NCBI RefSeq assembly: GCF_041956535.1 | Contig: NW_027192194.1 | Span: forward strand, 684,760-748,759 | DNA: 64,000 bases | Direction of reading: 5' to 3' | Source: Calcarisporiella thermophila CBS 279.70 | Taxonomy: Eukaryota; Fungi; Calcarisporiellomycota | Part shown: positions 45,742 to 54,662 of the stretch, in pieces | Numbering within the stretch: the stretch's first letter is position 1 | How the letters are laid out: each line of letters begins with the position of its first letter | Position numbers and translations under genes: made by a program | Notes under the pieces: generated by a model | What the model was told of the DNA's origin: nothing | Database searches by the model: none | What the model saw: only the letters and a program-made list of their open reading frames with translations

Positions 45742-47420
45742 CTAGTGCTTCCACACCTTATGCTCGAGGAGCATTTCGTTTTGGGGAGCAAGGCCAACAC
45801 ATGCGCGGAAAATATTCTCCATGGCCATACGCTGCTTACTAAGGGCGTTCACCACCGGGGTGCCGGGGGGGACCATGGGGGCCTTGAGCATGACTAGAGG
45901 CACAACCAAAAAAAAAACAAAGGCAGAGAAAAGTGAGAAAAACAATGCGCATGGACAGAGGTTCAGGTCAAGCGCTTACAGCTGAGGATGCTCAAGACGG
46001 AGTGGAAGGGGGCGTAGTCGGCCATGTCGTCGGTGCGGTACTCGATGCGGGTCATCAGCTCGGTGATGAGCACCAGGTCGAGGATGAGGGGCGAGGCCAG
46101 CAGCGAGTCCTCGCACATGTTGTAGATGGAGATGACGCTCTTGCCGCCCATGAAGATCTCGGAGTAGTACTCGTCGAGGGCGCGCTTCGAGTCGCCCACG
46201 CTCTTCACATACTTGATGACGACCACGTGGTCGGGGTGCTCTCCGGGCGCGTAGAGGATCTGGTTGGCGGCGACCATGTCGTCCACGACGCTGCTCTTGG
46301 AGATCTCCTTCGAGCGGAACTGCGCGTGGGACGAGAGGTTCATGCCGTCGTTGTTGCCGAGGTGGTTGTACGACGTGATCCCGATGGGCTTGATGCCCGC
46401 GTTGACGAGGAAGTCGACGAGCACGGACTTCACCTTGGTCTGGCCGGACTTGAAGTCGTCGCCGCCGATGTACACGCGCTCGCGCTCCGCCAGCTCCACC
46501 ACCCCCGGCACAAATGTGTTCTGGGGCGACCCGTTCACGAAGGGGACGCGCTCCAGGATGCACGCCAGGGCGAAGATGGTGGAGGGGGCGATCTCCGAGT
46601 GCGACTCGCGGACCGCGCGCAGGATGTTGTCGGCCGTGTCGTTCACGTTGGGGAGGATGTCGGCGTAGCGCTCCGTGTTGGCCGTCCACACCACGATCAC
46701 CGAGTCGAGGCCGTGGCGCTCGCGGAACTCGCGGATGTCCTTGCGGATCTGGTCCAGGTGGGCCTGCTTGTCGGCGCCGGGGATGAGGTTGTCGGCGCGC
46801 TCCGACTGGTTGGCCGCGATGAAGTCGGGGTAGTAGATGGAGGGCAAGGGCTTCATGCCCGCCATCTCCTCGTGCACTTGGCGCTGGAGGTCGTAGTCGA
46901 GGACCTGGGCCCGCTCCATGGCTCTGGCGAGGTCGTGCCCGCTAATGTCCCAGCCCCCGAGGGCGATGTCGTTGGGGTGCACCATGGGCAGGATGTCCGA
47001 GAACGGGAGGTACACGTCCTGGCCCTTGGCGTCGACCCCGAGCTTCAGCGTCGAGGCCATGACCACCGAGCCGAAATAGTTCGGGTGCTTCACGCCCTCC
47101 TTGGTGCGCCAGCTGAGCCCTCGGCGGTTCGCGATGATGGACGCGGTGAGGGTGGAGCCGTTGTTGCCGCCCCACCCCACCATCATCAGGCCCAGCTTGG
47201 GCACGCGTCGATCGGTGCGGAAGTGGTAGGTCGTCTTGGTCGGCGTGACTCGGAGGCTAGCGCTGCGCTCGTCCCGGGTCACCCGAGCATTTTCGTAGAC
47301 ATAGTCGGAGAGAATGTGCGTGTCCGTGTACCGCACGTTGTCCGAGTCGACCTGGAAGGCCAGGGGCGAGGCGGAGGACTCGGCACGTTCGTAGGAGAAG
47401 TCGGCAGTGTTGGGAGGCAT
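45742..47420 (-). CDS. INO1: Myo-inositol-1-phosphate synthase, 2 exons
   Basis: [37 protein letters not shown] and CEDSLLASP. Confidence 0.97.
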
Positions 47421-48133
47421 GGTTATCTTTTCTTTTTAGAGGGGAGAATGGATTCCGGGGAGGAAAATTACGGGTGGAGGAGGAGAAGAGATAAGGGGGG
47501 GGGGATAGAGAATACGAGATAGCAAAGAAAATTAAAAGGCTGGATAATGCCCGTTGGAGTGCGCTGTTTAATGGATTATTCGAGGGCGGTCACCGAGCCT
47601 CTTCCTTCCCCGGTAAGGGTTGTGAGTGCTTGAGAGTAGATTGGCGAACCTAGAGAATCATCAAAGAGCTATTAGAATGCATTCTCATTGCGCTGCATGA
47701 GGAGGCAAGATGCAGGCCGCCATGAGCACTTACGTGGTGGTAAGCCTTTGTTCGGCGCCGAATGTTAACGCCGAGATATCAACAGTGAGATGGGGGAGAT
47801 GTTTTGAGAGAGGTGGAGAGAAAAGGGGTCAAGAAATAGTCAAGATGGCGAGCTTATTCAAAGGCTAATAACTCTTAGGAAAAAGCTTGTGATGAATTGA
47901 AATCAAAGTTGGGACAGGGAATCTGCATGCGGCTTTTATTTGCCGTTCCTGAGCCCTTCTAAGATGTTGGGGTTGGGAAGGGGGGGGGAGGAAAATCCCC
48001 TGGAGCCTCGTATTTCGGCCAGACACTTGGGCCAATGAAGGGGGGCCGTGTGCGAGAATTAACACAAACATCCAAAATAGAACACAAAATCAAAACAGCG
48101 CAGTCGCGCGGCTATTTTATTTGCCCCCCCAGC

Positions 48134-51777: not shown

Positions 51778-52876
51778 GGAGCAAGGGTAATGGCGCAACG
51801 CAAAATGAGAAGTATTCAGGGCTGAGCAGCTGGAAGGGGGAATGAGCAGAAAAAGCAAGGGCAGCAGGCGGCAAGGGCAGGGGCTATGGCAATGACGGAG
51901 GGGAAAGGCAATGGGGAGAGGCTGTTTGCAAATGCAATGGGCAAATCGTGCAGAGCAACGGAGGGGGAGCACGGCAAAGGCAAGTACTTAAAATAGAGGA
52001 CGCATGTGGACACGGACTGCCTTTTTGAAGGTGACTGTGCGGCTAAGCAAACCTTATCTCCAGCGGACACAAAAGGGAACCGGGAGGGCTGGGCTCCCGC
52101 GAACAGAGCAGCGGCTGGACAGCTTAGGGGCAGGCCGTGGGTCATTATCTAATCGGGCCGCCCGGCTCCCTGCGCGCTAACAAACAAACGCTGGACGCTT
52201 TGTGCGATGGTGCTGTGAAACCGGCATCCAGGTTCTCAGGCCTGGCTGCCTGCTACCCGCTGTCATCACCCCCGTGCGCCGGGGGGGTTTCGACACCGCT
52301 GGGCCGGTCCCTGGGAGCGGTTCATTTGCGTCACGCGATCCATCCTGCTCGCGTCGCCCGAGCACGCATCCCAAGGCCCTGGCCCTTATCCTGTGCTCTC
52401 CTTGCAAAGCACGGGGCCGGTCTGAAACATGCAAATGGCACTCCGAGAGGGGGTTCTGACAGGCCAGAAGGGCCCGCCGTGCCCATTCGACGCGCCCGAT
52501 AAGCTTTCAAACTCATCCCCCCCAAATCCCCTGCCCGCTCGCCCACAACGTGGGCCTCGCCTTCCCCCGTCACCAACCAGCGCGCGCACCCTCGGGCGGA
52601 TCACGCCATCCATGCCTAGGTTTCCAACCTACCCGCCCGCCCCTGATTGGTGCATTTCCCCGGCCGGATTTGGACTTATTAAATTTCATTTTCATTTCCA
52701 CCTGGTCTTGATCCCATTTTCCTCACGCACCCAACCCCTTCTCACGAGAGCTCCCCTTCCCCTTCCTCTTGCTATTTAGGGCCGCCAGCCTCTTTGCTTG
52801 CTCTTCTCGCGCCTTCTCCCCCCTGCCCCCCTCTTGCCTTGTTCCTTGCAACACCAGCAGCTAATCCCATCATTCA

Positions 52877-53050
52877 ATGTCGCGCATTTTGGTGCTAGGA
52901 GTGATCCTGCTCGCCGTCGCCACGGTGTGCTGGGCCGTCCCCGTGCCATCCGATTCCAAAAAGGATGACGCAGAGCTGAAGAAGCGCGCATTCTGCGGTG
53001 GAGATCCCACCCCCCAGTGCCATGGCCGTCGCCATGGTGGTCATCACTAA
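52877..53050 (+). CDS. Small secreted prepropeptide, 57 aa. Not in the ORF track.
   Basis: MSRILVLGVILLAVATVCWA|VPVPSDSKKDDAELKKR|AFCGGDPTPQCHGRRHGGHH*: hydrophobic signal peptide, charged pro-region, KR site. Pyrimidine-rich leader, attcaATG context (same as the MFS gene), T-rich 3' region. Confidence 0.8.
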   Translation: MSRILVLGVILLAVATVCWAVPVPSDSKKDDAELKKRAFCGGDPTPQCHGRRHGGHH

Positions 53051-53537: not shown

Positions 53538-54662
53538 TCATACGGCCTTTGGGTTCCGTGACATCCGCCTGGCTAATAGGATGAAGAAGAGGGTGTACTC
53601 CGTCAGCTCCTCCTTGATCATGAAGAGCAATGCCTGCGAGAGGACGGCCTTGGTGATTTGTGCTTGCATTCCCTAATGGGGCATCAAGAAAAAAAAGAGG
53701 GCCTCCGCCAATCAGTCACCATCGCTCGTGGAGGGCGCAACCTCCTCTCGGCAATCCCTTACCTTGTACCATCCGGACACTCCCTCGCTTTTGTAGACCC
53801 TCGTCAGCACATCGATCCCCGACCGGTAGGGTGTCATCTTGACCCCGCGCGGCGCCTTCCACTGCATCCGCACCTTGGCCATGATGTAGGGGTAGGTCAC
53901 GACGGTGGCAAGCGTCTTGGACGTCGCCCCCACGAAGAACGCCAGGCCCGGCGTGAGGTCCTTTCGCCCCAGCCGCCTCAGCACCAGCGCCTTCACCCGC
54001 TCGAACATCCCGTACGTGATGGCGGGGTTGACCGTGAGCACGAGCGACGCCCGCAGGCCCTTCCAAAGCGTGGCCCACCCCTCCTGCCGCACGATCTCCT
54101 GCCCCGTCTCCAGCAGCGACTTCCGCTCCTCCGGCGGCAGGGTCTGCTGCCGCGTGGTGATGACGTTGATCGGCAGGGTGAACAGCTGCGTCAGCGCCCC
54201 CGCCACCGCCCCCACCCACAGCTCCGTGGCCGTGGAGAGCGTCCCCAGCCGCTTCTGGTACCGCTGCCGGATGATCGTGTAGAAGTAGAAGTAGGCAAAG
54301 CTCTGAGCCACAACCCCAATGAGGGCTGCCGGCAGCCCCGCAAACAGGCCCAGGGGGCCTTCCTCCCGGAGGATGTGCCGAATGCCCTCCACCGTCGAGG
54401 CGTAATGCTGCGACTGGCCGTCAGTTTTGCTCTGAACCTGGAGCCGGGTCTTAATGCTAGAGTGGGAGGGGGAGGGGGGAAGAAAAGAAAAGATCATCAG
54501 TCAGCATCGGTTGACGGAGATGGATCGGGAGATGCATAGCAAGGAAGGATGATATTACATGTCAAGTGGATAGATGCATATCAGCGAGATCGCCGCTCCT
54601 CCTGCGCCTGCCAGCGCATGTCCCCATGGCGGCAGCTGCTGCTCCTTCGAAAGTGCGCCCAT
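53538..54662 (-). CDS. ANT1: Peroxisomal adenine-nucleotide carrier (Ant1/PMP47-like, mitochondrial carrier family), 3 exons
   Basis: GHALAGAGGA...YPLDIIKTRLQ, LPINVITTRQQ, LVLTVNPAITYG, YPYIMAKVRMQ and GMQAQITKAVL. Confidence 0.85.

Follow-up and report, generated by a model that had tools for sequence, protein, structure and literature searches.

The precursor ORF and its gene model

The window analysed here is a stretch of 64,000 nucleotides on contig 4 (positions 684760-748759) of the Calcarisporiella thermophila CBS 279.70 genome, which comprises 28.2 Mb in 116 contigs. C. thermophila is a thermophilic saprotroph for which, to our knowledge, neither a close relative nor any other member of the phylum has been sequenced. 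It is an early-diverging fungus (phylum Calcarisporiellomycota), and the ascomycete-like context assumed in an earlier note on this DNA does not apply. The note had drawn attention to a complete ORF of 57 codons at 52877-53050 (+), with its ATG at 52877 and its TAA at 53048-53050, and start, stop and translation are exactly as given there. The ORF lies, as described, in the gap between an HSF-type gene and an ANT1-like gene, although this gap measures about 1.9 kb rather than 1.7 kb. The HSF-type DNA-binding gene VTP21DRAFT_8581 (P0006; 50557-51777, −; 353 aa, PF00447) is divergent from the ORF, with its ATG at about 51777, leaving 1.1 kb between the two start codons, and the mitochondrial-carrier (ANT1-like) gene occupies 53715-54500 (−) on the other flank.

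Residues 1-20 (52877-52936, +) form a predicted signal peptide made up of an n-region with Arg3, a hydrophobic core and the residues C-W-A before the predicted cut. Their best 12-residue Kyte-Doolittle mean is 3.33, Arg3 is followed by the hydrophobic run I4-A20, and Ala and Cys occupy the −1 and −3 positions. This hydrophobic segment, of about 18 residues, could in principle act as a membrane anchor instead of a signal peptide. The polar pro-region (residues 21-37; 52937-52987, +) ends in L-K-K-R, a Kex2-type site with Leu at P4, Lys at P2 and Arg at P1, and is followed by the 13-residue core AFC-x7-CHG (residues 38-50; 52988-53026, +), which is the predicted mature peptide. The precursor closes with RR (residues 51-52; 53027-53032, +), a possible second dibasic site, and an HGGHH tail (residues 53-57; 53033-53047, +). 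Upstream of the ATG, a CT-rich stretch at 52700-52876 (+) that includes a TATA-like TATTTAG at 52773-52779 would, judged by its sequence only, provide the core promoter and 5' UTR, and a T-rich stretch lies downstream of the ORF.

The ORF had been reported as absent from the track of open reading frames, and the public record partly differs, in that residues 8-57 serve as the last exon of a 215-aa model (XP_069254864.1 / VTP21DRAFT_8582; P0002), where they are joined to three upstream exons at 52004-52141, 52241-52456 and 52508-52648 (+). If this model were correct, the last 50 codons of the ORF would form the last exon of a larger protein that is not secreted. The model does exist in NCBI, and SnowyOwl, which was used together with MycoCosm to annotate this genome, can draw on RNA-seq to choose among ab initio models (PMC11393059). 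The 57-aa reading is nevertheless the better model, because the codon scores of exons 1-3 are like background (17th-48th percentile of small ATG ORFs), the 215-aa protein has no homologue (it forms a cluster of one), its upstream exons start well inside the 1.1-kb spacer, take up most of it and leave almost no room for a promoter of the HSF-type gene, and its last intron (52650-52896) would cut out the start codon and residues 1-7, a segment that aligns with the N-terminal ends of the two paralogues described below. The 57-codon ORF itself scores 0.135 per codon, at the 82nd percentile of small ATG ORFs. We therefore consider it very improbable that the 215-aa protein is real. The stretch 52004-52648 (+) is Arg/Pro/Gly-rich in translation, lacks homologues and looks non-coding, and exons 1-3 are probably a mis-annotation in the spacer before the divergent HSF-type gene.

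A family of three paralogous precursors

The ORF at 52877-53050 is not a product of chance. A six-frame search of the genome with the single 57-aa product found paralogue 2 on contig 6 (570563-570739, −; E 0.0037), and a profile built from copies 1 and 2 found paralogue 3 on contig 19 (174808-174987, −; E 8.3e-5). A degenerate DNA pattern for KRxFC...CHG matched exactly these three sites in the whole genome, with no match for the reversed control, and it is this recovery of two paralogues by protein, profile and DNA-pattern search that places the window ORF beyond chance. In the 250 kb around the HSF loci and the paralogues there are 116 small ATG ORFs with a signal-like start, of which only the three family copies also carry a Cys loop downstream of a dibasic site. 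A genome profile search for further members at E<=10 returned only a weak match on contig 95 (L015:1154-1399, +), which was rejected as a family member, being a different, secreted-type ORF that resembles the family in its signal peptide only. This ORF, of 81 aa with a signal-like start and eight Cys, is in its own right a candidate small secreted cysteine-rich protein.

All three copies are 57-60 codons long, with frames intact from ATG to stop, and share a common build of a hydrophobic signal-like N-terminus ending in Ala, a short pro-region, KR-AFC, a Pro-rich loop, CHG and a variable tail. The positions invariant in the three-copy alignment are M1, A20 (at −1 relative to the predicted signal cut), K36-R37-A38-F39-C40, P44, P46 and C48-H49-G50, while the pro-region and tail are divergent. 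Across the copies 20-27 residues follow the KR, and 13-15 of these (AFC...CHG) are conserved. Overall identity among the copies is only 29-39%, with copies 1 and 2 the closest pair. The eight KRAFC and CHG codons nevertheless differ at five positions (Lys, Arg, Phe, His and Gly), each time synonymously, which at this level of overall identity argues for selection on the peptide. The conservation is that of three old paralogues in one species.

The comparison separates what is common to the family from what is peculiar to the window copy. Both paralogues keep a signal-like N-terminus, a pro-region that ends in KR and, directly after it, a core with both Cys, as the earlier note had read them from one copy. 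The C-X7-C loop that it described is present in the window copy but is not a fixed spacing, with six residues between the Cys in paralogue 2 (C-x6-C) and nine in paralogue 3 (C-x9-C). Its Gly plus dibasic 'amidation signal' and its His tail are confined to the window copy: neither paralogue has GRR or any RR at this place, and the core runs on as CHGWGE... and CHGLHL... in paralogues 2 and 3 respectively, against CHG-RR-HGGHH in the window copy, so that the three tails are unrelated.

The paralogues differ in how they are annotated. Paralogue 2 reaches the 93rd percentile in codon usage, and its public model (XP_069253675.1, P0001; 72 aa) has an intron of about 600 nt after ...KEAN that leads to a different last exon, so the tail of this copy is uncertain. 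The modelled intron (L002:863-1472, −) has a GTAAGC donor after ...KEAN and an 18-codon last exon, and directly after the same donor there is also a candidate intron of much smaller size, whose branch site is CTGAC and whose acceptor is TAG. Paralogue 3 is unannotated, is found in none of the protein collections searched and has a neutral, background-like codon score (54th percentile). Copies 1 and 2 each have a TATA-like element some 100-120 nt before the ATG, which in paralogue 2 is a TATAAAA at about 120 nt.

The family is known only from C. thermophila, and its absence elsewhere is provisional, since the DNA of other fungal genomes lay outside the direct searches and small ORFs are often unannotated. 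None of the three precursors matched a Pfam family above the gathering score, the only matches at E<=10 being two sub-threshold ones to the hydrophobic segment. A word index of 5.8 billion proteins gave no match with the ORF; queried with the alignment of all three copies, it gave a paralogue from C. thermophila itself and nothing else. An exhaustive HMMER profile search, covering 1.84 billion representatives, recovered the two Calcarisporiella models together with three other proteins, which were set aside as unrelated repeat or defensin-like proteins matching the signal peptide or repeats. The suggestion that the family is undescribed thus holds across Pfam, the word index and the HMMER profile search, none of which matched a described family. 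The best score in the ESM Atlas (0.77) was uninformative, JGI metagenome contigs searched by alignment contained no relative, and exact-protein look-ups in public assemblies with the 57-aa ORF, P0001, P0002 and paralogue 3 found none, own-genome records possibly being excluded from these. This 28-Mb genome has two occurrences of the motif KRAFCxNPxP, compared with 39 in 596 Gb of prokaryotic genomes and with matches on 52 metagenome contigs; the prokaryotic and metagenome occurrences were dismissed as chance, as none has the second Cys-His-Gly or a signal peptide.

HSF-type neighbours and processing enzymes

Paralogue 2, like the window copy, is divergent from an HSF-type gene (VTP21DRAFT_9953), at a distance of 2.7 kb. 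In a comparison of 22 HSF-type loci (21 fetched and the window's own), VTP21DRAFT_8581 and VTP21DRAFT_9953 are mutual closest relatives, with 68% over 111 aa versus 50% for the next. Since the closest HSF pair coincides with the closest peptide pair, the most likely history is that a peptide gene and its HSF partner were duplicated together from one ancestral pair. The partners are not always direct neighbours. On contig 6, paralogue 2 and its HSF-type gene are separated by an intact pterin-4a-carbinolamine dehydratase gene (L011:1259-1579, +, corresponding to contig 6 positions 571558-571878; PF01329, E 1e-30) that has no counterpart at the window locus, and the 10 kb around paralogue 3 contain no HSF gene.

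Co-regulation of HSF-type gene and peptide is possible. Direct regulation by an HSF was considered and rejected, as the upstream regions of the three peptide genes contain no trimeric HSE, nor do they share a motif beyond chance. A general pairing of HSF-type genes with such peptides was likewise rejected: the surroundings of the other 20 fetched HSF-type loci contain no similar small ORF, and none was found beside HSF homologues in three other early-diverging fungi, Jimgerdemannia, Umbelopsis and Basidiobolus. HSF-type factors are greatly expanded in this thermophile, with about 23 loci encoding HSF-type DNA-binding domains, many of which have an intron at profile position 58/59.

The other neighbours of the three copies encode a RabGAP, an aldo-keto reductase, the pterin dehydratase, an NAD kinase, a PI-PLC, a Zn2Cys6 factor, HlyIII, hydrolases and a chitin synthase. 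None of the copies has a DUF3328, tyrosinase or P450 gene nearby, and the idea of a RiPP cluster was discarded because only ordinary genes, and no typical RiPP modifying enzymes, surround them.

Kexin-type proteases, for which the earlier note had suggested a genome search, are present. There are six loci with a kexin/furin P-domain (P_proprotein), located on contig 5 (1110032-1112179), contig 7 (757755-759762), contig 17 (258385-258645) and contig 19 (558104-558436), two pairs of which are close neighbours on opposite strands. Peptidase_S8 and P_proprotein are combined in all three loci that were checked, of which two are convergent genes on contig 5 and the third lies on contig 17. A single Kex2 is reported for most fungi (PMC8528282), and the kexin set of Calcarisporiella is unusually large. 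Kex2 cleaves with Arg at P1 and Lys at P2 and prefers an aliphatic residue at P4 (PMC8528282). The aligned sites read L-K-K-R in the window copy, which is the canonical L-x-K-R, V-D-K-R in paralogue 2 and K-E-K-R in paralogue 3.

Known peptide systems and a candidate role

Several known systems resemble the family in part. Secreted proteins and effectors of the K2PP type and fungal defensin-type precursors have a comparable single-copy architecture, in which a signal peptide is followed by a short N-terminal pro-domain ending in LxKR/KR and then by the mature product. In the K2PP layout a disordered pro-domain lies in the first half of the protein after the signal peptide and ends in KR/RR or LxxR (PMC8528282, Outram et al. 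2021). Such a pro-domain is found in all three Calcarisporiella copies, but a mature folded effector domain is not: the predicted mature part is only 13-27 residues long, with two Cys and no folded multi-disulfide domain, and the host is a saprotroph and not a plant pathogen. KEPs, which include the ascomycete alpha-type pheromone precursors, have a signal peptide, dibasic KR cleavage and a released peptide, to which the hydrophobic N-termini, KR sites and cores of the Calcarisporiella precursors would correspond. They release peptides of 9-24 residues, and the pipeline that defined them required at least three repeated cores between KR/RR/KK sites (PMC6339444, Le Marquer et al. 2019). The Calcarisporiella family falls outside this definition, with one core per precursor in all three copies.

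Other likenesses are more restricted. In animal amidated neuropeptide precursors (contryphan, oxytocin-type) a Gly and a dibasic site come after a Cys loop, and only the window copy, in which Gly-Arg-Arg comes after the loop, would resemble them; the other copies do not keep the Gly-dibasic arrangement, and the genome gave no match to PHM domains. Plant and mycorrhizal CLE dodecapeptides are likewise short and Pro-rich with a His near the C-terminus, and ...SPNPSCHG in copy 3 loosely recalls the CLE GPNPLHN, although CLE peptides begin with Arg and are not known to contain Cys. A Bowman-Birk-like inhibitor loop was considered and rejected because the loop length varies (6, 7, 9) and there is no P1-Ser motif. 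As read from its precursors, the family is new and lineage-restricted but of a known kind, that of kexin-processed secreted peptides.

The ORF is probably one of three paralogous C. thermophila genes for single-core secreted propeptides, for which we infer secretion, cleavage, a disulfide and a function from sequence. The N-terminal signal peptide would take the precursor into the ER, and a Golgi kexin would cut after the invariant Lys-Arg, exposing an invariant Ala-Phe-Cys N-terminus. The product would be a short peptide in which two invariant Cys enclose a Pro-rich loop of 6-9 residues and are followed by the invariant His-Gly. In the window copy, kexin cleavage at RR and carboxypeptidase trimming may reduce this product to the 13-mer and detach the HGGHH pentapeptide, whereas the other two copies would keep their unrelated tails of 7-15 residues. 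A disulfide, or joint ligation of a metal, would bring the ends of the loop (AF-C ... C-HG) together into one surface, and conserved loop ends presented in this way would suit recognition by a receptor or other partner. The most likely role suggested by these features is that of an extracellular signalling or otherwise bioactive peptide.

The same residues permit a different reading of the core. Cys40, Cys48 and His49 are invariant, and additional His occur in copy 1 (HGRRHGGHH) and copy 3 (HGLHL), so a Cys/Cys/His metal site instead of a disulfide is a live alternative, and the two-Cys alpha-pheromone of Fusarium is active in its reduced form (PMC7289986). That the family as a whole consists of secreted metal-binding peptides, which chelate Cu or Zn outside the cell through Cys...Cys-His and the tail His and have no disulfide, seems to us unlikely, given that Cys pairs passing through the ER are usually oxidised, that copy 2 has no extra His and three ligands on a 13-mer make a weak argument, and that no metal-related genes lie near the copies. 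An improbable alternative is that the three ORFs are relics or not expressed, such as the decayed remains of an old gene that no longer yield a product. The missing annotation and neutral codon score of paralogue 3 and the lack of known orthologues would fit such a history, but all three frames have stayed open despite their low overall identity, the motif codons have changed only synonymously, and the TATA-like elements of copies 1 and 2 also speak against it.

The least probable reading is the one that the CHG-RR-HGGHH of the window copy most readily brings to mind, namely an animal-style amidated, hormone-like peptide in which Gly50 donates the amide after cleavage at RR and the His-rich tail binds metal. 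The Gly is invariant but the dibasic site that would have to follow it is not, and the tails of the paralogues are unrelated. With the Gly-dibasic site in the window copy only, amidation is unlikely as a property of the peptide family. The earlier note had also suggested looking for a PAM-like enzyme; a six-frame genome search with the two peptidylglycine monooxygenase domains (PF01082, PF03712) gave no match at E<=1, which is a weak negative because of the six-frame approach and because the control genomes were silent.

No part of fungal genomes is annotated less well than the small secreted peptides, and the three genes of this family are a case in point, one being buried in a doubtful 215-aa model, one having a doubtful 3' exon and one being unannotated. 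Bioactive peptides released by Kex2 are well studied in Dikarya (pheromones, KEPs, RiPPs) and hardly in early-diverging lineages. If the Calcarisporiella peptides are real signals, they would place short two-Cys peptides released by kexin outside ascomycete mating as well and would offer an easily tested system, since the 13-mer can be synthesised. If they are not expressed, they are a reminder that paralogue conservation alone does not prove function.

The ascomycete peptides closest in outline to the predicted core are the two-Cys alpha-pheromones (Fusarium WCTWRGQPCW, Xylona RFCHLPGQGCSK), in which the first Cys likewise follows an aromatic residue, the loop contains Pro and the second Cys comes 6-7 residues later. 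The Calcarisporiella family differs in lacking tandem repeats, G-Q and any sequence similarity, and in its host, which lies outside Dikarya; a central Gly-Gln turn is required in the alpha-pheromone (PMC7289986). An exon-wise six-frame search found no match to the Ste2 receptor (PF02116) at E<=1 in the genome, which is a weak negative. A bolder proposal, which we consider doubtful, is that the peptides are the first non-Dikarya fungal peptide signals made via the alpha-factor route, that they act through a non-Ste2 receptor, and that they were co-inherited with a pair of HSF-type regulators that control or answer them. Receptors of the Ste3 class bind lipidated CAAX peptides. The genome contains a single gene for a STE3-type (a-factor receptor) GPCR, at positions 46661-47551 (−) of contig 42, with a score above the Pfam cut-off.
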